Assembly: GCA_030704615.1 (NCBI GenBank)
Contig: CM060734.1
Location: 23,374,001 to 23,438,000 of the forward strand
Direction: 5' to 3'
Length of the DNA stretch: 64,000 bases
DNA from: Takakia lepidozioides
Taxonomy: Eukaryota > Plantae > Bryophyta
The notes under the pieces are model-generated. The model worked only from the letters and a program-made list of their open reading frames with translations. It was not told where the DNA came from and searched no databases. Numbering within the stretch: position 1 is the stretch's first letter; every line of letters begins with the position of its first letter. Below, piece after piece: positions 47,517-64,000 of the stretch. The position numbers were made by a program, and so were the translations under genes.

Positions 47517-47589
47517 GCCGCCCTAGCTCAGTTGGTAGAGCGCAAGGCTCTTAACCTTGTGGTCGAGGGTTCGAACCCCTCGGGCGGCG
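47517..47589 (+). tRNA. tRNA-Lys (CTT)
   Basis: 73-nt cloverleaf: acceptor GCCGCCC/GGGCGGC, anticodon arm caagg-ctCTTaa-ccttg, GGTTCGAA T-loop, downstream T-run. Confidence 0.96.
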
Positions 47590-48759: not shown

Positions 48760-51420
48760 CAAAGGATCTGACTCCTCTTCTTGTGCTTCAGGTTGAACAG
48801 CAAACAGAAATGCATCGGGAAGTTGATCTTACACTCTTGTTGCTGGTTCACCTATGGTAATTCTTGACAGATGATCTGCCGTAACATGTAGTCTTCCAGG
48901 TTTATGAACCACTTCAAAATCATACTCATGAAGTGGTAATAACTATCGAGCAACCCTGCTACTAGTTAGTGGTCGATTTGCCAAATGAACCAAAGCCTGA
49001 TGATCAACAATAAATTTAAAGTGATTGCCAAGTAAATAATGCCGAAACTTCATTGCCAATGCTTCCCTCTCTGTGGTGCTTTAGTTCTTTTCAGCAGATG
49101 TCAGTAGTCTGCTTGCATAATAGATTGGAGAATCTATTGTGCCTGTCACATTCTGAGCCATAACTGCTCCAAGGGCGATGCCTCATGCATCACTATGTAC
49201 ATGGAATGGGTAGATCCCATCTTGGATTGATCAAGATTGGTGCAGTTATGAGTGCCTCTTTCAGCGAATCAAATAATTCCTGACAAGCTGGAGACCATTG
49301 GTGTTTGACATCTTTTTTTAGCAGTCTGTAGACTGGTGCTGCTCTGTGAGCATACTTGCACATGTATCGTCTGTAGAAACTTGTCTGTCCCAGGAAGTTT
49401 TTAAGCTTCTTTGGATTCTCTGGTGGTGGTATTTTCTTGATACTGTCCACATTCTTTGGGTCAACCAGAAGTCCCTGTTGGCACACAATGTGTCCCAATA
49501 ATACTCTTGAATTCACACAAAATGTGCATTTTTCGGGGTTTAGACTTACCCCATTGATTTTGCATACTTATAGGTAGAGCTTTAAATTTGTAAGCGTAAG
49601 CTCCCCATTCAGTGATGAATGTGGTCTTCTTTCGGTCTTCCTCTGCCATCTGCAGATCTGATTGTACCCACTGAATCCATCCATGAATGAGTACATCTCG
49701 TGTCCTGCCACCATGTCCAACACTATCTCTGTAAAAGGTAGTGGAAATGGGTCTTTCTTGGTTCCTGCATTCAATTTGCGGTAATCCACACATACTCGCA
49801 ATTTGTCATTTTTCTTAGGCACGATTACAATGGGTGATAACCATTGTGGTGTCTCTACTTGGTATATGAATCCTGCAAAGGTAATTTCTTGATTTCTTCC
49901 CAAACCTTTGCTGCAAAGTTGGGATTCATCCTGTATCCGTTCTGTCGAACAGGTTTAGTATCCACTTCTAGCTCAATCCAGTGCTGACAGATAATTGGGA
50001 GGTATTCCCTTCAGATCCTTGTAGTTCCAAACGAATACATCTTTGTATTCGGTGAATAGTGCAGCAAGGCCTCATGTAGGAATGATTCTTCAAGGCCTGC
50101 ACTTACTCGTATTATCTGTGGGTCTTCCACTGTACCCAAATTCATTTGAATCAGTTGAGTTTCTTCCGGCAGTGTCCATCCTGCAATATCTTGTCCTATG
50201 GTAGCAATCGTGGCTGGTACTTCACTGATTTCTGATATCCTCTTCTCTTTCTTGATAGAAACGAGCGGGATGTTGAGGTGTGTCCATGGCTTCCTCCTCA
50301 GGGTCATCTGTTACTGGATTGCTTGTTTCCCCTTGTGTGTTCACCATGTGACATCCTACTGTCGTGGTATGCTTGACCACTAGTTGACCAATAGGTTCTA
50401 GCTGTGGATGTGTTGCATACACCGTAGCTTCTTCTTCATCCGACAGTCCATTAGACCAGTCATATTCTTCCACTAGGCAAGGTCGTTTCTCTCATAGCAT
50501 CGTACCTCGTTGCTTAGTGGTGATAGTGACTTGTTTCGACCCTTTCTTGATCGTGAGAGTTAGACTTCCCCAATCGTGGTAAGATTGGGCTTGGGTTAAC
50601 CATGGTCTTCCAAGCAATAACAAATACCCTTCTGCCACGTCTTCCATTCTGAGAATTGTCACTGGTACTTCGTATAGCAGTCCTGCTACTTCCATTGCTA
50701 GACGTCTGATGATACCCAATGGCTATAATTTCCGTTGATCTACCATTCGTACCGTGAATGGAGCAGGTTCCATATGCCCCAATCCCAGTGACTTCTTCAT
50801 TTTCTTTGTCATTGTATTAACTCCCGATCCTCCGTCGATGAGTACATGCATCACCAATTTTCGTCCAATACGTACTTGTATCACCGGTATTGCTTCATCT
50901 TAGTCTGGAACTCGTGGTATAATCGTGGGTTTAATCGTGTAAACCTCTGGTGTTGGCGTCCTTTTTGGTGTAGTGGTCAAGGCCTCAATTGCCCGAAATA
51001 ATGTTTTATTGCAGTGTGGAGCAATTTTCAATAATTGTCCAATGGTGATTTGTGTCTTAGTCTGGCATATTACTTCAGTCAATGCCGTCTTCGTGGTTTC
51101 ACTCGTGGTTTTCGTGGTTGGTCTGATCTGGTCATCTGGAGTTGGATCTCCAGAAGGTATATGGGTCCTTTCTTGCATTTGGGCTATGGCCTTGCTTACC
51201 TCCTGGTGTAAGCTCTTTTCTTCCTGCCATGCTACACTTTCTGGATATTGTTTCCGGTCTTCGTCGGATTCAGACTCCTTATCTGGAGGTTTCTGTTCTT
51301 GTCTCGAGTTTGGGTTACCGCAAGGGTATCCACTAGTTGGAGAGAGCTCATCGCAGGTATCGGCTGGTCCCGGAGTGTTTACATGGATCTGCCTATGTCT
51401 GGACGCAGACTGCAATTCAG
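48760..51420 (-). mobile_element. Decayed Ty3/Gypsy (Athila/Tat-like) gag end-PR-RT-RNase H
   Basis: VLIDGGSGVN, LLLGRPWL, WLSPIVIVPKK...CVDYRKLN...MDGFSGYNQI, LLGHIVC; many stops and frameshifts. Confidence 0.88.
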
Positions 51421-52020
51421 CAAAGGGTAAGCAAGTGGATGGAAGCAAAAACTTGGCCAGAGTTATTGACGGCCAGATGGATGGAGGACTTGTACATCAA
51501 TCAACCCAGTGCTACACAAGTCACACAGGTGGGGTTTGCGATATTCGAACGATGTCACTTTCCTACTAACTGGGAGTACTCAGAGTTTTTGGGCAGGACG
51601 GAGAAGGTCTATGCGGATTCTGACGATAAGGTGTTGCCATGTTGCGAGGCTGGAAGGATGAGTCTGATGTCGAAGAGAATGAGACCTTAGAGACAACAAC
51701 AAAGCCCTTTCAAATTCCCCGTGGTCAGAACCACTCGCCACTGCGGGTTGCAATAATGGATGCAATGGGTCCCACCTATCCACCTGTCATCCCCGTACGT
51801 CTTCATGAGGCCACCGACGGAAGGAAAAGAGGCTTCTCATTCTCATCCCCTGCCAACTCCTCCATTCATTTTAAACAGTATCCCGGCTTCAGATTACTCC
51901 GAAAAACCAATGTTATGTCATTCCTTCACGGACAGTGCGTATGGGATAGCGACAATCCCATCGGCTTTCCATGCATTTTGTAACTTTGCATGCCACACAT
52001 TGCTCTTTTAATGCCGAAAC

Positions 52021-52655
52021 ACATGTAGTTGTCACCGACTACATGTCAATGTAATTGACTGATTCCGTATGGATTTTCAAAAGGGGTGAACACGTAGTAC
52101 TCTCTCCAACTGTTGAAATTGAAGGACGGTACCGAACGGAGCACATAAGGTAATGCAAACTTCCGCAATTGGGCGAATGAGGTCATGGAATATGTGGAAT
52201 TTAACATATTCAATGGATTTTGCACTCTTTCATTGGGCAACAGTAAAGGTCGGTGCCGACTAAAAGTATATGAGATCGTGGAATGTGCGGTCTTCATCAA
52301 ATTATATGGAAATTGATATCTTTCGAAGGGCTAACAGTGAAGGTCGGTGCCGACTACATGTGCACATCCTCTCATTGAAACGTGGTAAATGGGCATATTG
52401 TAGGCAAATCCCACAGTTCTTAGCCCAAAGTCTTATACGCCCAACAGTAGAAGCTATATTCGAGAATAGCATAAGACCACCTTCCAACAGTGGGATTTGG
52501 CATATTATGGGCTCACTCCAATGGACCAACGGCATGATGTGGGTGGTGCGGTGCCGATTACAAGCATATGAGGTCAAGGAAACAACGGAATTGGTCATAC
52601 AATAGGCAAATTGAACTGATCGAGGGGTTTTCAATGGAGGTCGGTGCCGAGTAAA
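52021..52655. repeat. Spaced palindrome family A (TAGTCGGTGCCGACTA-like), cluster 1
   Basis: Copies near 52021, 52249, 52343, 52548 and 52640; degenerate copies near 52126 and 52438; spacing ~100 bp. Confidence 0.75.
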
Positions 52656-52820
52656 GGTAAATGGGTCCATGGATACGACGACAATGATGGCATATTATAA
52701 GAAAATACGATTCCCCCGCAACGAGTACATCCCAATTATCCAATTGCTCTCATGATTGCACGGTAGAAAAGAATAGCGACAGCGCATTCTCATCAACTGG
52801 GACACCTTGGATAGGCAGGA

Positions 52821-54005
52821 ACGGAAATGCGGTGCCGCATTTTCCGTCCGGGCTCTTTCAATGGAATCCAGAGGACGGAAATGCGGTTCTGCATTTCCGT
52901 CCTGCTACGGCTGTTCTGCTACTTTCGATTGCTGTTGGACGAAAATGCGGCACCGAATTTCCGTCCGAGGTGCACCTTTGTATTTTCAAGAACCGGAATG
53001 CGGCTACTCATTTCCGTCCAACATGCAACGCCTGTAACAGTGCAACGGAAATGCGGCACCGCATTTCCGTCCAAGTCGTACCTTCCGACTTTCCAGAACG
53101 GAAATGCGGCGCCGCATTTCCGTTTTTCATCTCAGGCATGCAGCACGGCAGGCAATGCGGCATGGGGGCCGCGCATTTCCGTCCAGGTTAAAACCTTATA
53201 TCTCCAGAACGCGAAATGCGGTGCCGTATTTCCATTCTGATTGTAAATCATGAAACACTGCAACTAAAATGCGGCACCGCATTTCCGTCCGAGTCGTACC
53301 TTCCGGCTTTCCAGAACGGAAATGCGGCGCCGTATTTCCGTTTTGCATCTCAGGCATGCAGTAGTGCGACGAAAATGCGGCACCGCATTTCCGTCCGGGG
53401 AAAACCTTTATACTCTCCAGAACGGAAATGCAGTGCCGCATTTCCGTCCAACAAGTAAGGTATGTAATAGTGGGACGGAAATGCGGTGCCGCATTTCCGT
53501 TCTGATTGTAAATCAGCATGAAACACTGCACAACTTAATGCGGGGGCGCAGTTCATCCGAGTCGTACCAGGGGACTCTGACTTTCCAGAACGGAAAGCGG
53601 CGCCCGCATTTCCGTTTTGCATCTCAGCCATGCCGCAGTAAGACGGAAATGCGGCACCGCATTTCCGTCCAACAAATAAAGTATGTAACAGTGGAACGGA
53701 AATGCGGTGCCGCATTTCCGTTCTGATTGTAAATCATGAAACACTGCCACTGAAATGCGGCACCGCATTTCCATCTGAGTCGTACCTTCTGTTTTTCCAA
53801 AACGGAAATGCTGCGCCGCATTTCCGTTTCTTGTCAGGCAGCTTGAAACCGCATTTCCGTTCGGAGGATGCAACTCAAAGCTGCCTTAACGGAAATGCGG
53901 CACCGCGCATTTCCGTTTTCACTCTAACTCATGAGATGTTGGTGACGCAAATGCCATGATATGTGAACACGTGGTACGCACTGGAAATGTCCGGGCACCG
54001 CATTT
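52821..54005. repeat. Array of ~21 26-bp palindromes ACGGAAATGCGG-NN-CCGCATTTCCGT separated by ~27-bp spacers (53-bp period)
   Basis: Units start at 52821, 52875, 52939, 52992, 53045, 53098 ... 53263, 53316, 53369, 53422, 53475 ... 53590, 53643, 53696, 53749, 53802, 53889. Confidence 0.95.
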
Positions 54006-55799
54006 TGATGTCTGCACTCAGCTCAGTCTGTGTGGTCAGGAGGCGCGGGGGGCGCCTGACCATTAATTAATGATTTTGTTTTTGCGGACGGCAGACTACT
54101 CTTGACGATTCAAATTTCGTAATGACGCATAGTCCACGAGGAGACACTTCCATCCCAGCCTTTCGAACCCAAGTGGTGCATCACCGCCGTTTCATCTTCT
54201 TTTGTCGTGTCTACTCAGTCATCCCTCTCGCCCTTTCCATCTGCACTCTTTTCTATGTCTGTGTTCCTCTTATGCTCTCAGCTTGAGAGGGAGGGAGTTC
54301 GTGCACCAGAAGAGACACATCGGCCGCATTAGCTCCGCAAGTTGTACTTCAGACGTAGCCAATGCCGAAGGGGAGGAAGCAGATGTGTTCTTCAGGAGGA
54401 GATGGTCATCTCGCAGCAGCAGGCAACGCAGTAACCAGCCCAGCCCGGCAGTAGAGCTCCGTGCTATCGGGATGCGCGCAGCTGATCGAGCACCCGAAAC
54501 CCTCCCTCATTTTCGTTGTGCAATTCTTAGACTATATGATAGGACACTTGAATGTAAGATGTTTTGCAATGCCTAACTCGAAGGTGGAGGTGGTGGAGGG
54601 ATCGCAGGAATCCGAAGAGAGCCGCAAGAAGATCCGTGGAGCTAGCTGGCAGCACGCACAACCCAGCCGATCCACGAGCACGGGGTCTTCCTGCCGGGCC
54701 TAGCCCTGTGCATTTTAAGGATGCGGCTTGGAAAGGCAAGTTTTTGCAGTTCAAAGCCCCAAAAAAAAACTCGCGGTTGAAGGTCATGGAGAATCGTCAG
54801 CAAGGTTTGGGCCCTTCTCCAGCAAAGACGAAGAAGAAGCAGCCTATCCTTGAACTGGTTTCTGAACCGTACCAGGCCGTTTCCCCCTCCCCCCAAGAGA
54901 ATGAAGCAGAAGGGTCATTGCAGATTCAAATGCAGCAGGACACCTTCACCTGCAAGAATCAAGAAGCAGAAGGCAATCAGGGGGAGGGGGCAGCAGTCTC
55001 CCGCAAAACCGATTCCACGACCTGAAGCCCAGTTCCTCCTGCTTGATTTCCAGGCATGTGATGTTGGGGGCGTCTCTGCTGCAGCGAAGGCAACGGGATC
55101 GACCGATTTCGTCGATCTGTCAGCGGAAGAGGGTGCTGCTGCTGCTGTGTGTCAGACAGCAAGAAGGAGCGTGGAGTTTACACATCAGGAGGGGGCGGGA
55201 AAAACTGCAATGCAAATTGTGTATAGGTGAAGCCCAGCTCCCGTTGTATGCAAAAGCTGGGTTATGAGGTTTGCCTGGGAATGCGGCACCGCATTCGCAC
55301 TTTATGTTTTCGGTTGCACTCTGCGAATACATTGGTCATAACTTGTGCTCACACATGCTGACTGTCTTGCAGGTATATGAATAATGTGCTTCTTAAGACG
55401 GGGCCCTGGCTCAAGAGCCCCCGTTCTTCATGGCTTGGACCGTGGCGGGCCCAGCTGTGTCTACACACCAGAGATGCAGAAACAATGGCATGCCGCGCAT
55501 CTCGTTGGATGCCCGTGGTACCTGGACATGTCCGGCGGACTTGTTGACAAATCAGAGAAAGATCTGCACATGAAAGCGGAGGAGAAGAGAAAGGAAAGAC
55601 GTGTCCCTGCTGGGCCTGAGTCAGCAAAGGACGTTGCGTCTCTGGAACAATCCAGAAAGGTCACTGAGATGCACAGAAGACGGTGGATGCAGCTGTGCAG
55701 GCTCAACAGAAGGGGTCGAAGAAGAGGACTCACCAGCAAGGAGCAGCAATTGTGAAACCCAAGAAGACGAAGAAGCAGAAACAGAAAGAGCAGGAAGAG

Positions 55800-56500
55800 G
55801 GTGACGAAGAGGACTCCGATGGAGACTTTGCAACCAGCCCACCCCCCGAAACGCAGCTGAAATCCCCTGTGCCCACCGAGGGACGAGAACAGGCTCAACA
55901 AAGAAGGCACTCTTCAACCCCCCGGGGGGGCACCCTTTTGAGCCGGTGGAAATGAAGAGGCCGAAACTGGAGCCAGAAACAGTAGTTCAGTGTGTTAATG
56001 AGAGTTTCTTGGCGGCTTTGGATGGACGGGCAGCGCAAGTTGGCATACATCAAACCATGGAGGGTCTGAAGGGCAGAGCACTGAAGAAGGTAGCTGCCAA
56101 AGAGCCTCCGACACCCCTGGGTTTCTGAAGATGGTCTCGTTCTTTGAGAAGGTGTGTGCAGGGAAGGATTGCAGGAGGGGCGGAAAAGCCACCGAGTGGT
56201 CTTGCGATATGATCATCTTGGATATTCCGGACGGAGAGCTTGTGGAACTAGGACTGCAAGCTTTGCCATCTTGGAACAGGTACTCCGAGGACTTTTGGAA
56301 GAAGGACATGTCGGGCTCGCCCGCATGGTGTTGGACGATAGAGGCTGTGTGGTTGTCCTGGCGAGTAGAGGCAAAAACACGGAGGCATGAATTGCGAAGT
56401 GGACCCGCAAGAGCGTCGTCCCAATTCTGAAGAAGAAGTGGATGTGCATCAACACATTGGGCCTTCGGTCGGAAGGGAAGAAGGGGGATTGAAAATGCAT
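55800..56500 (+). pseudogene. Beta-class amino-methyltransferase-like ORF, copy 1 (3' part of a frameshifted, probably spliced gene starting near 54550)
   Basis: CDMIILDIPDG...PSWN...LARMVLDDRGCVVVL...WMCIN resembles DLIITDPPY...RVLKxxGxI...WxKxN. Confidence 0.5.
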
Positions 56501-56696
56501 GCGCGGTGAGCATGAGCGGAGTATTCCGAACCTTGCCCGAACCTACACCAAACCAGAATTATAGACCAAAAACACGCAGGTCCGACCTCGCCGAGCACAC
56601 TACTTCCCCATACCTAACAGGGACAATTTGGGATTTTGTAAAAGCGCAGGGAAATTGGGGTTTCAACGCTTATAGCCATGCCCCAAGTTTTGCCAT

Positions 56697-56980
56697 TATA
56701 GTCGGCACCGACTAAAACATAGCAGGCCAATATAGGGTAAAACGCCCCGTGCGAAGCTTGCGGGTGTTGTAATCGCCAACGACTACAGAAAGCATACGAA
56801 ATTAGGAGGGTAATCGTCGTTGAATTAATTCAAATACAATGTGGCAAATAAAACTTGGTTACTGTTATAGAAGGCACCGAGTAGGTGACACGCGTTGGTG
56901 AACGATTGAAGAAGCATATGAGGAACGTAGATGAGCGAAGGTACTGCGTTCCAAGCTCAAAGTATAGTTGGTGCCGACTT
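56697..56980. repeat. Palindrome family A, cluster 2
   Basis: tatagtcggcaccgacta at 56697; variants near 56769, 56865 and 56963. Confidence 0.7.
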
Positions 56981-57544
56981 CATGCACTTAAGTTAAATGA
57001 GGGACAACCAACATGTAGCCCAGTGGTAATGGGCACATACCACGTTGGATGTGGTTGTTCAAACCACAGTCTGGTGTGTCATGAAGGTGTCCACCTTTCA
57101 GCTGGAAAGCAGTAGCCCTTGTGGTGAAGAGACACCATAAGTTACGTTCCATTCGGGAGGCGTCATAATGAATGAATGAATGATTAAATGAGGCAACTGA
57201 GTGGAGTCTCTGTTTAAAAGTTCATAGAGCGCATTGCCTACCCATGGCTGTTGGTTTTGGAGGAGATCAGAAAGCACTCAAAGAACGAGTTTGGGTTGCC
57301 TTGGCCATTGCACCATCATGTCAAGATCATGGAAGCTGTTGAAGCATCGTGGAAGAGAAATTGTAATCCGCAATATTGAAATCCGGGCACATCATTGGAT
57401 GATACCAAACAGTTTAGGTGGCATAGAAAAGCCTAGTGTCTACTCAGTGATAATTGGGGCCTCATTAAGTACTAGATGTGATGACACCATGGTCGGCCAC
57501 GATAGACAATCGTCACTATGGTAACCAAGGACAAGGGTCGTGAA

Positions 57545-58890
57545 CTAACATTGTCTTCACCTCATTTATGGAGAGATTAGGGTGGTTGATGTCCTCCGAG
57601 TCTTCTCCCGCATTTTCAATCGGCGCAAAAAATATAGTATATATGCTTGCAGTGGGTATATGCGGATTTAGCCCTCTTCATTTTTCCAAAGTCAGGGCAG
57701 GTGCACTCCAGACTTCTAGAGATGCACACATTGTAGACCTCCCCTGCTTTGGCCATCCCGTGTGCAGAGTGTGTACACACGACCAATTCCAGGGCGGGAA
57801 CATCTTGAACGATTGTACAATTGCCTTCAAAGATTGTCCGAGCTCCATCTTTTTACGGGCTTGTGCACTCAATGGCTTTCGTCGATATATTTTATCCCAT
57901 CTCTTGGTTGCATATGTGTCCGGATCCAGGTGATTGGTATCCTCCCTCCTCCGCAACAGGTGTCCCCTCTCTCCTGGCAGCGCTTTAAATCGTCTGTAGA
58001 CAATCAAATCGCCAGCCACGGTTAAGGGTGCCACCTCCTCCTGATTTAAATTTGTCCCAACCATCACAGGCCAAACGTCGGGACATCTAGTCTATTGGCA
58101 CGCATCGCCCTGCTTCATCACCACCGACGGCAGTAACACGATTCAGTTGGAGGGGGCAGTGCCACATTTCCATCATCTTTGGTTTTACGCAAAGCCGGAG
58201 GATGTGGGCGACCACATATCTTGGGAGTGGGCAGGAACACCTCAAACTGTTGAGTTGCCGGATTCTTCTTTGGCCGGATTCTTCTTTGGAGAGACATCTG
58301 AACAGTAGTTGTGGGCACTCTTAGTCTTCCAGCACCTTCACGGCGCCTGGGTGTGGTGCGGAGGTTCATGTCAGGCCTCCATGAATGAAGGTGTTCCTCG
58401 TCTTCTAAGTTGCCTAAAACAATCTTCCGCTTCGTTGTCCGAGTGAGAAGGTCGCCCTCGAGCCCAGGATTTCTACCATAGAGAGGAGTTCCCTCCACAA
58501 AACTTCTTACCGCCTCTGCCATCTTCAGAGGATCAGAAGACCGCGCTGCCGCCCAATGTAATATTGTTGGCGGTCGGGACCAGAACCCTTTGCACCACCC
58601 TTTAGATAAATATGGAAGGCCGATGATTGCAAAATAGCCCTTGTCATGTGTCGTCTTTTGTTGGCTGTGTACAGGTCCACTTTTAAGACACCACTCCCGG
58701 CCTGCCAGCTCGCATTTGGCATTGCTGCGTCCTCTTCCAAATCCAATCCTTGCAGGTAAAATCTCCATCATGAGAACTACATTTGCGTGGACAACGAAAA
58801 AGGCAAGGTCTTAAGGTGAGGTTCATCGAAACGATATCGAGCCTGAAGTTATCAGCACCGAATATAGCCATCGAATGCTTCATGACACAG
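57545..58890 (-). pseudogene. SWIM zinc-finger protein gene, frameshifted (transposon-associated)
   Basis: Minus strand 57780-57616 translates YNVCISRSLECTCPDFGKM...YTHCKHIYYIF (CxC...CxH); co-linear upstream ORFs 57678-58067 and 58118-58771. Confidence 0.65.
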
Positions 58891-58902
58891 AACCCAATCT
58901 TA

Positions 58903-59325
58903 AAGTCGGTGCAAACTATAAGCTACCCACAATAGTGCCATGTCTTACGCTATAGTCGGTGCTGACTATAGAGGGAATGTTCTACTGAAGTGAGCTGCAC
59001 AGATGGGACGCTATGTTATAGTCGGTGCAACTACTATATCCACAATAGTGGCATTCCAACCGAGGCCGGAGTTTGGAGGATAATTTGCTACATGTTATTT
59101 GCTACATGTTATGCTATGTAGACTATAAGCTGTGGACAATAGTGCCCTACGCTACGGTATCTTCGGTGCAAACTGTACAACGAGTGTTCTGCTGCTGTGA
59201 ACCTCATGTGATCAGAGAAAATGTATTCACATTAAGGATCAATGTTAAAAATCTAATGTCATAGTCGGTGCAAACTATAAGGTAAAACAGTGCCATTGCA
59301 ACGCTATAGTCGGTGCAGACTACAG
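58903..59325. repeat. Palindrome family A, cluster 3
   Basis: tatagtcggtgc(a/t)(a/g)actata-like copies near 58904, 58951, 59018, 59162, 59261 and 59306. Confidence 0.75.
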
Positions 59326-60779
59326 TGGAATAAGGTCTCCTCATATGTGTTGTGCTTCATATCACCGAAGCGACTATGAAAGCAAGGTTTCGCTCATGTG
59401 AGCAGATCTACATCCGCTCATGGATTCTTTTTAAGGTAGAATAAACATAGTTCTCGATGGAACTGTAATAGTCAGACCTATGTAACAAGATTAAATGGGT
59501 TGTGGTTTGGTATGGATTATGTTTTTTAAGTTATGAGATTGCGGGTTCGATTACCAATCAATAGTCTTTTTTGTAAAATTGACGGGCCATCGCCATTTAC
59601 TACCCAAATGCGCAGGCGGACCATCTCCATCACATTGTCAAGCCCCCTAGCATTCCCTTAGCATTGCTCCATTCTGAACTTCAAACTAGACTCCCACCAT
59701 TGGAAGAGCCCGTACCTTCACCATTTGTATCTAACAAGGAGCCATGCCTCGTCACTTTTAATTTTTCGACCTTTTTCTCATGTTGGAAAGCCATAAAGCA
59801 ACATGTTCCTCTCCCATTCCTACACTCACCCATGTGGAATAATAATACAATAATATGGAATATTCTATATGGAATATTCTTATTCCATCCTTTGATATTT
59901 TGACTATGGACCCTAAGATTAGATGAATCACAATTTTATTTTATTTTTTTGGGTACCCTTATTTAAGTGTTGTGCATATAAAATTGTTCCTATGTGTATC
60001 TAAAATTTGTATGCACGCATACATTCCTCCATATGCATGCATTTGTGTGCGCATATAGTATAGGCTACCTCCAACTACATATATTTCCCCTATTCCAAGT
60101 CTAATAACCAAAAAAACAAATGGTTAGAAATTATGGACTTTGGAACGAGTCCATAAGGATTTGTTATAGTCCATATAAAAAGCCGTTATGGATTTTTTTT
60201 AGAGCATGATTAATAGAAAATTAAAAAAAGGACTTGACCAAATGTGCTTTGAGGGATAAAGAATCTAGAATGAAAACATCCACTCAAAAATATTGAGTAA
60301 TATAAACTTTATGTACTATTTTGAGCCTTCAAAATAACTATTTTTGTAAAGTCCTTTACATATAGAATTCTTTGAAATATCAACACTACCTCATTAAATA
60401 TATAGACCAAGGGTAAACCCCCGGGGTGGATCAAGGTCAAATTTGAAAAAAAAACTATCGTGCGGGTGGGGGTGATGCATCTGATTAGCCCCTTCCTCCA
60501 CCTCCAGATCTGTCACTGGAGGAATTCCAGAGTGCAGCGGATGCCATATTGGAGGAGACACACAGCAGCATTGGCAGAGTTCTGGGGAGCAGGGTCTTCG
60601 CTCGGACACTGCAAATTCCACTCTGTCACATGGTCTCCTTCCCCATCGTCAGGTAAGCTCTCCCAGGGAATGTGGATAAGCTGAAGTTTGCATTTCGAGA
60701 AGGGTCTCATCTAGGTTCTCCCGCCTTCTACATTTCCATTGAAGAATGAGGAAGGTGAATCGCGTGGACCCACAGAAGG

Positions 60780-61480
60780 AGCAGGAAGAGGCTGAAGACT
60801 AGGGCGAAGATAGGGACTTTGTAACCAGCCCACCCCGCGAAACCCAGCAGAAATCCCCTACTGCCGCTGTTGTGGCGAAAGGCACGAGAACTGGCTCAGC
60901 AAATAAAGCACTCTTCAACCCCCCGGGGGGGCATCCGTTCGAGCCAGTGGAAATGAGGAGGCCAAAAATGTTGCCAGAAACAATAGTAAAGTGTGCCAAT
61001 GAGAGTTTTTTGGCGGCATTGGATGGCCGGGCCGCCAAGTTGGCACATATCAAGCAAATGGAGGGGCTGAAAGGCAAAGCTCTAAAGAAGGCGGCTGTAG
61101 AAGAGCCTAACAACACCCCAGGATTTGTAAAGATAGTGCAGTTCTTTGAGAGGACAAGTTCAGGGAAGAATTGCATGAGGGATGGAAAACAAACCGACTG
61201 GTCTTGTGATATGATCATCTTGGATATTCCGGATGGAGAGCCAGTGGAAGGATTGGATGTTGTGCCTTCTTGGAGCAGGTACTCCGAGGACTTTTGGTAA
61301 AAATGATGTGGGCTAGCCCGCATGGTATTGGATGATAGAGGGTGTATGGTCGTCCTTTGCAAAACTAGGACTAACCTCGGTAGTGGTGATCAGGGCTGAG
61401 ATATCAGTATTCATTCCCCAGCATAGGCAAAAACACAGAGGCATGAATTGCGAAGTGGACCCGCAAGAGTGCCGTCCCAA
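60780..61480 (+). pseudogene. Methyltransferase-like ORF, copy 2 (diverged duplicate of 55790-56425)
   Basis: NESFLAALDGRAA...WSCDMIILDIPDG...PSWSRYSEDFW...LARMVLDDRGC; followed by family-B palindrome remnants at ~61508 and ~61594. Confidence 0.55.
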
Positions 61481-61969
61481 TACGTCCCATTTCATCCAAC
61501 CCACCCTGGATGGAAATTCGGCGCCGCAGGGGCCTCAGGTTGGGTGCCACCTGTGCTTCTCTCCCCCACACAAGGTTTCATCCAACTCCCACCGGATGGA
61601 AATAGGGCGCACCGCATTTCCATCCGGGGGGCTCGCAATTGGCTATCATCCTCCCCCCGGACAATATATAGTTCATCTGGAACCATGACCAAGAATTTAA
61701 ACTTTGGAGTTTCAATATGGAATTTAAAAACATTGATGGAATTTAAAAACATTGAATTTGGAGGTCCTTGTCCCCTATGACCGTGGATCCCTATACCCTA
61801 TTCCCGTGGACAATCATTTGTGAAAAAAAAATTCCCGTTCATGATTTTTTCGGCAATTACGAGTCTGCTCATGGCTCATGAAATAGCAGCCCCCGTTTGA
61901 CGAGTATTGTGCTAGGGGTGCAAGATTTGGCCATGTAATAAAATTCGCTGCACATTTACGAGGGGTCAG

Positions 61970-63266
61970 ATACGTTAGGGGGCAAATGAGGTAGTGACTG
62001 GTGGGATAATAGGCATTAGCATGCTTGGGGTGATGTCTAGGCGTTGCTGTATGGACTGGCGATAATGGATATTGATGAAGCAGGGAGCAGGCTGAAGGTG
62101 GTTTGTAGGAGTGTTAATAAACGCGGGTATAACTTGGTTGAAGGTAATCGGATGTGGAGTAATGCGATGGTTTACTATCAAGTGGGGGCGGTTATTGAGG
62201 TGAATATAGGGAGTGGTGATTAAGGTATAGGTGAGGTTTGCCTGCCGCCAGTCATGAATATTGTGTAATATTGGGGCTATATAGATTGAACAAGGGAATG
62301 GGGGGGGTAGTAAAGGTGTAGCAGGGGGGTGGCTAGTCTGTTGGTCAATTGGGCAGAGGGATATGTGGCATTTACGCAGTGTGTAGTGGTGGGGGGTGAG
62401 GGGTATCCAGTGTTAGATGGTATAGGGCTGCAGGTCTAAGTGTGAGGATCTTGGCATAGTGTAATTGTGCTTTGTGTATAATATGTGCTGCACAGAGTTT
62501 AATTGGGCAGTATTAAGCATGGTAGAGGCAGGGATTGGGAATCCCTGGTGTTTGGAGAAATAAAATCGATGGCATTTGATTGTATATGGAGGGGGGGGAG
62601 TTGGGGGTGTAAGTACTTTGTGAGTACTGAGAGATTGTGGTGGAGAGTGGTGGGGTATCTATTGGTATAATAGAAGTGTACAGGAGTTGGAAAGTATCCA
62701 TGGGAAAAATAGTATATCCCTTGATTTCGGAAGGGAATGGAATATGGAAGGGTGACACCGTGTGTATAACAATTACAAATTTGTACCAGATACAGCCCAT
62801 ATCAGGGGGTAATGAACAGACTGAGGGGAGAAGGTAGCTGGTAGTTTCTGAAACTGGGGGAATAACAGTAATTGCATCAAGAGTTAGCAGAGCCATGAAG
62901 CATAGCCTAGTGGGTGCAATTGATGTGCCAAGCATGAAGATTGGCCCTGAGTCTAAGCATCACATATGTCTGGGCACTTGTAAGCCAGTGGCAGTGAGTA
63001 TTGGTTGAGTAGCTAGGTGGGCTAATCCATGTAGTGGGCAAGACAGAATGGTATGTTGTTGTTGGGAACGATGGCAGGTAAGTGGGAGGCCAACACAGCT
63101 CCATACTGTTGTAATGGGATAAGATGTGCTCGGTTGTAACGAGTGTTGCAGAGAGTAGTTGGGGGAGGATGTTGTAAAGCCTTCGGGAAGCCAACGTGTG
63201 GATGGAACCTGCACATGGGGAGAGCACCTGGTGAGAATACTGTAGATGAGGGTTAAAGGGCTGCAG
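61970..63266 (-). mobile_element. Decayed sequence with the same strand-biased composition as the Dualen-like LINE
   Basis: C/A-rich minus strand with Pro/His/Thr-rich broken frames; no firm domain. Confidence 0.3.
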
Positions 63267-63997
63267 TGTCACGGCCCTTTGCCTTGAGGGTGAGGAGTCG
63301 GGACACAAGAGGGGCTGCCCCTGTGGTGGGGGCAGCGGCAGCAAATTGGGATAGGGGCTGAAGCACCCTTGAGTGCCAAAGGCACTCAATGAGGCGGATG
63401 CGCTCACTAGGTGGAGCCCCGCCAACCGGGTTGCGGTGGGGGGGGGCTCCATGTGGGGTGGTGGTAGCGTAGGGAGTCGTAGTGGGGGGTGGCATAGGAC
63501 TCACCATGAGGCTGAGGCCTTGTGGTGGGAGTCGCGGGGAGTCTTGGGACTCACTATGGTCCATGGGGGCCGTGGTGGGTGGGCCAAGATTCACTGCGGC
63601 TTATCACAGGGACAGTCGAAGGTCCTAAGTGGTGGTGCACCAGATTTGGACTTGGCTACTTGTGGAACCCCCGCGGACACCTACAGAAGTATATATAGAG
63701 AGTAGTAACCCCGAGAACGGTGCAAGCCCGTTGGTGACCAAAAGCTAATGAGTAAGCGTGCGAGCCGAAAAAGCGACCAAGGTGTGGGAAACTATTCCGG
63801 ACTACCATCTACCAAAAGGAATTTCCACTAGGCGCAAAGTGGTGGAGGGTCTTTTGGAAGCACAAGGGAAACCGTTATGCCCCGATGAGCAATTGAAGCT
63901 CCGAATTAGCCCGGCAGCCAGTTTGGGAGTTCGACGCGCACATCAAAACGAGTAACTATGACTTGAAGGGGAGTTTAGCAAAGTGAGGTACGCGACA
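63267..63997 (+). mobile_element. Probable solo LTR of the same chromovirus family
   Basis: Reverse complement of the 6994-7718 LTR, TG...CA ends; left flank TGCAG and right flank begins TGC (window ends), consistent with a TSD; no PBS or PPT adjacent. Confidence 0.88.
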
Positions 63998-64000
63998 TGC

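Follow-up and report, generated by a model that had tools for sequence, protein, structure and literature searches.

The locus described here raises the question of whether a group of broken genes and short palindromes in the bryophyte Takakia lepidozioides derives from a mobile element, and which protein the palindromes might serve. The genes and palindromes form a block in a window of 64 kb, i.e., the whole stretch of DNA that was analysed and to which all positions refer. An earlier note proposed that the block is an undescribed, large cargo-carrying DNA transposon, the proteins of which bind or modify its own palindromic sites. The layout reported there, with clusters of one palindrome family (A), a 53-bp array of another (B), a second copy of a gene, and an AT-rich segment, was recovered in the analysis (Table 1). 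The block is, nonetheless, best explained as a patch of debris and not as one intact element.

Table 1. Features of the palindrome-bearing block, with positions in the window
Feature	Position	Strand	Description
Unassigned ORF remnant, left edge of block	51420-52010	+	Stop-free pieces of 84-117 aa
A-left cluster	52024-52655		About 5 copies, consensus TATAGTCGG-TG-CCGACTATA
B array	52821-53906		18 copies of ACGGAAATGCGG-NN-CCGCATTTCCGT at 52821-53827, plus partial copies at 53847 and 53889
Gene copy 1, pseudogene	54560-56363	+	Low-complexity K/E-rich 5' part, then conserved coding segment 55781-56363
B-like palindrome	55276-55293		GAATGCGGCACCGCATTC, within putative intron of gene copy 1
57-nt block	56369-56425	+	95% identical between copies; partner 61425-61481
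Putative decayed B-like site	56470-56510		Position matching the B-like palindrome of copy 2
A-mid cluster	56697-56982		4 A sites, spacing 71, 98, and 97 bp
SWIM-finger gene remnant	57619-58320	-	Frameshifts near 57830 and 58100; motif at 57643-57705
A-right cluster	58901-59324		About 6 A sites
AT-rich segment	About 59400-60440		GC 0.35, CpG observed/expected 0.50
Gene copy 2, pseudogene fragment	60772-61297	+	Open 165-aa piece at 60803-61297
Two B-like palindromes	61509-61632		Directly 3' of copy 2; include CCGGATGGAAAT...ATTTCCATCCGG

The B palindrome measures 26 nt, and its 18 sites in the array follow a strict 53-bp phase. The B 20-mer was matched 15 times, compared to zero times in shuffled sequences. 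As DNA, the palindrome can form a hairpin (-12.6 kcal/mol, z -5.5), and a nested palindrome of 87 nt in the array reaches -34.4 kcal/mol (z -12). The CpG observed/expected ratio is 1.30 in the array vs. 0.59 in the window. The array also contains higher-order repeats of 106 and 274 bp, and plain tandem duplication could be the source of its regularity. A CRISPR-like reading was rejected because the spacers are not unique but recur as these higher-order units; the eukaryotic, transposon-rich sequence counters it as well. Beyond the array, B-like sites are found at 55276, 61509, and 61597, and the palindrome 3' of copy 2 has a folding energy of -15.0 kcal/mol (z -4.9). In tblastx, 56471-56509 matches 61594-61632 weakly but collinearly, which suggests one further site, now decayed, behind copy 1.

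The A palindrome (TATAGTCGG-NN-CCGACTATA) is 20 nt long and occurs at 12-15 sites across three clusters. Its 12-mer gave seven matches vs. 0.08 expected. In the left cluster, local units recur at 94 and about 297 bp, and in the right cluster the right-arm CpG has decayed in several sites (CCGAC to CAAAC, CTGAC, or CAGAC). When the three clusters are compared, the 20-nt palindrome alone is conserved and the flanks are unrelated, suggesting that what functions is the palindrome as such. Orienting the A sites via their flanks failed for the same reason.

The arms of the two families are unlike, yet both share a CGG-NN-CCG core and are restricted to a block of 9.4 kb. The common CGG-(TG/CA)-CCG core noticed earlier was confirmed by counting: all 21 CGGYRCCG octamers of the window, representing the CGG-YR-CCG core of A and B, lie between 52127 and 61519, and shuffled sequences contained 2.8 on average and eight at most.

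The duplicated segment comprises about 650-760 bp (55781-56425 and 60772-61481) and shows about 80% nucleotide identity between the copies. The start and exon structure of copy 1 are putative. Copy 1 is interrupted by at least two frameshifts relative to copy 2 (about 55870 and 56110), and copy 2 by in-frame stops (60800 and 61298). The 57-nt block stands out with three differences vs. about 20% elsewhere (binomial p = 0.0014). Between the copies, dN/dS is lowest in the plus frame (0.24), compared to 0.46 for the antisense shadow frame and values above 1 for the remaining frames, and 21, 22, and 42 substitutions fall on codon positions 1, 2, and 3, respectively (p = 0.007). The duplicated segment is a true plus-strand coding sequence that evolved under purifying selection. 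Given the dN/dS and the codon-position bias, most of the 20% divergence predates the loss of a working protein in both lineages; the copies were broken independently, after diverging. Sublineages of a multi-copy family would be expected to diverge in this way. Minus-strand ORFs at 55998-56558 and 60802-61389 were rejected as genes, as they share third codon positions with the plus frame and have a worse dN/dS. Both gene copies have B-type palindromes at hand: copy 1 is preceded by the array at a distance of 0.7-1.9 kb and has an intronic site, and copy 2 is followed by two sites.

These parts might also be neighbours by chance, i.e., a palindromic minisatellite and dispersed short palindromes lying beside unrelated pseudogene debris with no functional link. 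All parts are decayed, nothing in the window ties a protein to the sites, and higher-order units such as those of the B array are typical of satellite growth. We consider such a coincidence highly improbable since both palindrome families, with their common core, are restricted to one block, B-type sites adjoin both diverged gene copies, and the A sites are conserved but not their flanks.

Several searches were directed at the proteins of the block. Pfam was scanned with 40 stop-free pieces and ORFs from the block and the sequence directly flanking it, and PHROGs and NCBIfam with ten pieces; no block piece gave a match above noise. An exact look-up of eight ORFs of the window in a sequence collection found none. 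The duplicated gene has no relatives in Pfam, PHROGs, NCBIfam, or word searches; across the block, word searches were blank for pieces of 165 aa, 137 aa, and 230 aa. A HMMER profile search of 1.84 billion proteins (representatives) returned just two spurious repeat-protein matches, metagenome and viral scans by protein returned nothing, tblastn against plasmids found neither a methylase nor a relative, and the ESM atlas gave no meaningful match for the 165-aa piece. The AlphaFold model of the two-copy alignment was unusable (mean pLDDT 44.8).

These results bear on the label "amino-MTase-like", which the gene had been given and which is unsupported, as its sole basis was the string DMIILDIPDGE and no search revealed methyltransferase homology. 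One could still see in the gene a highly diverged, catalytically dead ParB and N6/N4-methyltransferase-like accessory gene of the algal kind, with the palindromes as parS-like loading sites. Indeed, SCDMIILDIPDGE is shaped like amino-methyltransferase motif IV (a hydrophobic strand, then D-x-P-x-G), and inverted-repeat arrays adjoin the gene, as with algal ParB-domain accessory genes. However, motif IV, (D/N/S)-P-P-(Y/F/W), is absent, both copies reading D-I-P-D (LDIPDGE). Beyond 56363 and 61297, the plus frames contain no piece with AdoMet-binding motif I (FxGxG), and the end of each copy lies no more than about 150-300 bp from the conserved exon. Neither an N6_N4_Mtase profile (e.g., PF01555) nor a ParB domain was matched in Pfam at E up to 10, PHROGs, or NCBIfam, and the ParB/Srx N-terminal domain (PF02195) was missing from all stop-free pieces of 51337-62000. 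The outcomes of the profile search, the plasmid tblastn, and the structure prediction also speak against this explanation, which we regard as unlikely. More generally, the stop-free pieces yielded no DNA-binding domain, be it ParB or WRKY-GCM1. For the earlier proposal that the element's proteins bind or modify its palindromes, no ParB or methyltransferase domain was found, and the window does not allow a functional link to be drawn between genes and palindromes.

On the minus strand, the reported SWIM gene turned out to be a broken remnant, but the finger itself is probably real, judging from its motif and from protein-language-model features. The signature CxCxnCxH is present as CTCPDFGKMKRAKSAYTHCKH; a bare SWIM motif turns up about once in 64 kb of shuffled sequence and is weak taken alone. 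By its atlas features, the piece scored 0.93, with 182-189 of 256 features shared, and 25 of its 30 matches were SWIM clusters (recognition 2661). The Pfam models for SWIM (PF04434) and MULE (PF10551, DDE) had no match in the block, word searches with pieces of the remnant were blank, and a PDB sequence search with the SWIM piece found nothing. The remnant represents the 3' end of a gene and is plausibly the tail of a Mutator-type transposase, for which a C-terminal SWIM finger is typical in MULEs (PMC1702500).

The whole block might be ordinary debris of a Mutator-like element. Its palindromes would be subterminal or internal sites of the transposase, read by an N-terminal WRKY-GCM1 finger, and the duplicated gene, just captured or accessory, would play no part there. 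In MULE transposases, the catalytic core is combined with a WRKY-GCM1 domain at the N-terminus and a SWIM finger at the C-terminus (PMC1702500). In addition to the SWIM finger in the block, a comparison by eye only shows some likeness to MULE motifs in the minus-strand frames that lie upstream of it. Moreover, the B half-site AAATGCGG contains ATGCGG, i.e., six of the eight bases of the GCM-domain binding site ATGCGGGT (PMC2172107). Nevertheless, this origin appears rather doubtful. The Pfam models and word searches were silent, a regex scan of the block and Pfam revealed nothing convincing as an N-terminal WRKY-GCM1 zinc finger, no TIRs were found, and the B palindromes accompany the plus-strand gene in both copies, not the SWIM remnant.

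As for the setting of the block, the window is rich in transposons, and clear Ty3/gypsy genes lie elsewhere in it. The retroelement remnants said to flank it were not recovered, as Pfam had no match in the immediate flanks. The ORF remnant at the left edge, a putative member of the block, has no match in Pfam, PHROGs, or NCBIfam. The AT-rich segment, in which no tRNA was found, is probably an unrelated insertion. Except for the palindrome array, the block contains no long-range inverted repeats. TIRs and TSDs were sought at the block ends, at a putative insertion of B into A, and around the AT-rich segment, with nothing convincing found. As stated in the earlier note, no DDE domain or termini were found, and the idea of one large element was not supported.

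A mobile-element origin is still the best reading, as suggested by two diverged and independently broken gene copies, purifying selection, B-type palindromes beside each copy, and a transposon-rich region. Against it stand the missing transposase catalytic domain, TIRs, and TSDs. Other copies were sought by protein, profile, and palindrome in public, metagenome, and viral collections, and none was found; with the B palindrome, the metagenome scan gave just four single chance matches and the viral scan nothing. The mobility of the block is hence putative. Our preferred explanation, to which we give an even chance, is that a family of DNA transposons with palindromes left at least two copies here, of which rearranged and decayed fragments make up the block; the palindromes would be phased sites bound by a dimeric protein that the element encodes. 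The gene copies have just about 650-760 bp in common, and the A and B families could come from different elements and be merely nested.

The preferred explanation implies the following mechanism. The two pseudogene copies would represent a protein-coding gene borne by the element, with B-type palindromes adjoining each. A protein encoded by the element would bind the palindromes as a dimer, reading the CGG/CCGs and the family-specific flanks. A spacing of 53 bp (B) and about 48 or 97 bp (A) would bring neighbouring sites to about the same side of the helix, enabling a cooperative coating of the element's own DNA. This coating may serve either the recruitment of transposase or the protection from silencing. 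We infer both which protein binds the palindromes and what the binding does. In a bolder reading, which is quite improbable, the duplicated gene would be the first piece of a so far unrecognised family of accessory proteins that evolve fast and are encoded by transposons of seed-free plants. By itself or together with the SWIM protein, its product would read CGG-NN-CCG palindromes. Within a single element lineage, the arms of these palindromes would have diverged to become private "address labels" (A and B). Protein-site co-variation would then create a self-recognition code independent of ParB and methyltransferases.

If element proteins are linked to private palindrome arrays, these transposons would carry the means of recognising their own DNA, which could be used in transposition control or in silencing escape. 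So far, this idea exists as a prediction for algae only, and the decay of the window is too advanced for testing it.

Among known systems, bacterial ParB-parS partition or clamp systems offer a parallel in that clusters of short palindromes could serve as dimer-binding sites. In contrast to them, the block shows no ParB homology; its sites of 20-26 nt are built on a CGG-NN-CCG core and follow a 53-bp phase. The block resembles MULEs in the SWIM finger that ends a minus-strand gene remnant and in the context of a plant DNA element with internal repeats; since a catalytic domain, an N-terminal finger, long TIRs, and TSDs were looked for without success, it is a candidate member at most. The closest precedents come from brown and red algae, where accessory proteins encoded beside tandem inverted-repeat arrays were proposed to bind or modify their own transposon (PMC12477816; bioRxiv 10.1101/2025.02.11.637652). 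Sola1-1_Ec32 of Ectocarpus carries a ParB-like and DNA methyltransferase accessory gene with adjacent inverted-repeat arrays (PMC12477816), and Plavaka and Mutator elements of Bostrychia/Chondrus (PAG3) carry ParB-domain accessory genes with such arrays (bioRxiv 10.1101/2025.02.11.637652). The general design is therefore already published, and the block is not "undescribed" as a kind. In contrast to the algal transposons, the block has no detectable ParB, methyltransferase, or oxygenase domain, and its gene has no detectable relatives. It also comes from a land plant, combines two palindrome families that have one core, and contains dead fragments as its copies. Like the algal transposons, it contains a non-transposase gene beside tandem inverted-repeat arrays within transposon sequence, the B array and B-like sites adjoining both copies, and it invites the same proposal of an element protein binding its own DNA. 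To this picture, the window adds a second, homology-less gene accompanying such palindromes, one core common to two palindrome families, and sites that were retained when their flanks were not.

The block at 51420-61970, proposed in the earlier note as a candidate multi-gene DNA element, lies in a eukaryotic, transposon-rich window (CpG o/e 0.59), in which Pfam identified clear Ty3/gypsy gag, RT, RNase H and integrase genes outside the block. The left-to-right order of the parts was borne out, and the observation as a whole was largely correct. The note had also placed the block between two retroelement remnants; its immediate flanks are without a Pfam match. A tRNA-Lys (CTT) gene at 47517-47589 precedes the block by about 4 kb. 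Immediately beyond the other end, a 19-nt sequence, ATGGAATTTAAAAACATTG, is duplicated in tandem (two copies, 61717-61755), and the region 62000-64000 shows a strong G skew (GC skew up to 0.6) and no Pfam matches.

Parts of the block, in window positions; A and B are the two palindrome families
Feature	Position	Strand	Remark
ORF remnants	51420-52010		without any homology
First (left) A-palindrome cluster	~52024-52655
B array	52821-53906
Gene remnant (copy 1)	~54560-56363	+
Second (mid) A-palindrome cluster	56697-56982
Remnant with SWIM-type motif	57619-58320	-	motif at its end
Third (right) A-palindrome cluster	58901-59324
AT-rich segment	59400-60440		GC 0.35
Second copy of part of the gene (copy 2)	60772-61481	+	diverged
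B-like palindromes	61509-61632		two

The most likely reading, at about even odds, takes the block as what is left of a DNA transposon family that bore palindromes, represented by two or more copies or sublineages. In its favour are a gene shaped by selection and present as two copies that were broken independently, the palindromes of the same kind adjoining each copy, the SWIM-finger remnant and second palindrome family of the same core alongside, and the transposon-rich surroundings. The transposon reading is plausible but unproven: searches of the block found no TIRs, TSDs, or DDE- or KDZ-type domains, no further copy came to light, and none of eight window ORFs looked up in a protein collection was present.

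Alignment of the duplicated gene segments, 55781-56425 and 60772-61481, gave about 80% identity, and weak collinear similarity runs on to about 56510 and 61632, respectively. Substitutions at codon positions 1, 2 and 3 of the plus frame numbered 21, 22 and 42 (p = 0.007), and Nei-Gojobori dN/dS was 0.24 in this frame, 0.46 in the antisense frame with which it has third positions in common, and above 1 in the other four. The codon-position bias and the dN/dS of the plus frame indicate a real coding sequence which diverged mostly under purifying selection. The open antisense frames at 55998-56558 and 60802-61389 (minus strand; 187 and 196 aa) were rejected as shadows of the plus frame, since their third positions coincide with it and their dN/dS is the higher (0.46 vs 0.24). 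Neither copy is functional any longer: the frame of copy 1 has to be corrected at least twice (about 55870 and 56110), and that of copy 2 is interrupted by stops at 60800 and 61298. The last 57 nt of the common region (56369-56425 and 61425-61481) are 95% identical against the 80% background (p = 0.0014) and contain ACCCGCAA, a sequence similar to the GCM site in reverse.

The label "MTase-like" given to this gene found no support in any search. Its sole basis was SCDMIILDIPDGE, a string outlined like motif IV but with DIPD in place of (D/N/S)PP(Y/F/W). No match was obtained in Pfam (E up to 10), PHROGs or NCBIfam. A protein word search was blank, and the atlas (the ESM protein atlas, searched by language-model features), scans of metagenome and viral DNA, and tblastn against plasmids were negative. 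A profile search with HMMER over the full set of 1.84 billion cluster representatives yielded two hits, both of them repeat-protein artefacts. The AlphaFold model of the gene was unusable (mean pLDDT 44.8). Pfam performs well on the window's intact genes, so its silence here is meaningful for intact domains; it is compatible with a very diverged or truncated domain.

Both palindrome families occur far above chance, and the core on which both are built, CGG-YR-CCG, is confined to the block: the 64-kb window holds 21 of these octamers (shuffle mean 2.8), every one of them within 52127-61519. The B consensus is ACGGAAATGCGG-NN-CCGCATTTCCGT (18 sites), with 15 motif matches in the window and 0 in shuffles. 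Its sites follow one another at exactly 53 bp, except towards the left end, where intervals of 54, 64 and 59 bp occur, and at a single interval of 115 bp, i.e., two periods plus 9 bp. The units form higher-order repeats of 106 and 274 bp, and pairs of them give rise to larger nested palindromes, one of which (87 nt) folds as DNA at -34.4 kcal/mol (z -12). CpG o/e reaches 1.30 in the array, compared to 0.51-0.62 in the gene copies. In one B-like palindrome beside copy 2 (61592-61627), ATGG...CCAT stands where the array has ACGG...CCGT. The change is symmetric in both arms; deamination of paired CpGs may account for it, or else co-variation that preserves the dyad.

The A consensus is TATAGTCGG-NN-CCGACTATA (12-15 sites), with 7 motif matches against 0.08 expected from shuffles and a spacing inside clusters of about 45-50 or 94-102 bp. 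Across the three clusters, the palindrome alone is conserved and the flanks are unrelated, which argues for the site as such as the unit of conservation. At several palindrome sites, CpG has decayed to TpG or CpA; in the right cluster, for example, CCGAC has become CAAAC, CTGAC or CAGAC. Exact A-type arms, TAGTCGG-NN-CCGACTA, also occur in two phage contigs, 4 times in IMGVR_UViG_3300033388_001667 and 11 times in IMGVR_UViG_3300027822_000032, with a variable central dinucleotide and largely at the boundaries of genes. Judged solely by size and order, the genes nearby resemble terminase, portal and capsid genes, and no DPPY-, GERR- or SWIM-motif ORF was seen in either contig. Though the arm identity is striking, it is probably a chance match to the phages' own intergenic hairpin.

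The motif of the minus-strand SWIM gene, CTCPDFGKMKRAKSAYTHCKH (57643-57705), would be weak alone, as the pattern turns up three times in the window, against roughly one occurrence in each shuffled version. In the atlas, however, a 78-aa piece scored 0.93 with 182-189 of 256 features in common, and 25 of its 30 nearest named clusters were SWIM clusters. Judged by motif and features, the finger is probably real, though the Pfam SWIM model does not match this piece. The remnant needs three frames, which implies frameshifts near 57830 and 58100. Minus-strand frames upstream of the motif hold strings resembling MULE catalytic-domain motifs, a resemblance unsupported by any search run.

The palindromes are inferred to be phased binding sites of a dimeric protein encoded by the element. 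By analogy with algal transposons, in which tandem inverted-repeat arrays adjoin ParB-domain accessory genes (PMC12477816; bioRxiv 10.1101/2025.02.11.637652), the binder would be a ParB-domain accessory protein. Alternatively, as a lead, the WRKY-GCM1 finger of the transposase itself could have read the array. The B half-site, AAATGCGG, includes ATGCGG, i.e., 6 of the 8 bases of the GCM-domain recognition site ATGCGGGT (PMC2172107), and MULE transposases carry such fingers combined with a catalytic core and SWIM (PMC1702500). However, the WRKY-GCM1 domain is absent from the window, block included, and the ParB domain likewise. The block was assigned neither to a ParB-methylase-like nor to a MULE family, whose defining domains were searched for and not found.

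A non-exhaustive literature search found no land-plant report of such a transposon design. Nevertheless, the element cannot be called undescribed in kind. For brown, red and green algae, the literature describes transposon accessory proteins with a proposed role in binding their own element and modifying it epigenetically (PMC12477816; bioRxiv 10.1101/2025.02.11.637652), as well as ParB-fused methyltransferases in chlorophytes (PMC4738411). Specific to this window are a once-functional gene without homologues travelling with palindromes, one core in two palindrome families, and sites conserved without their flanks.
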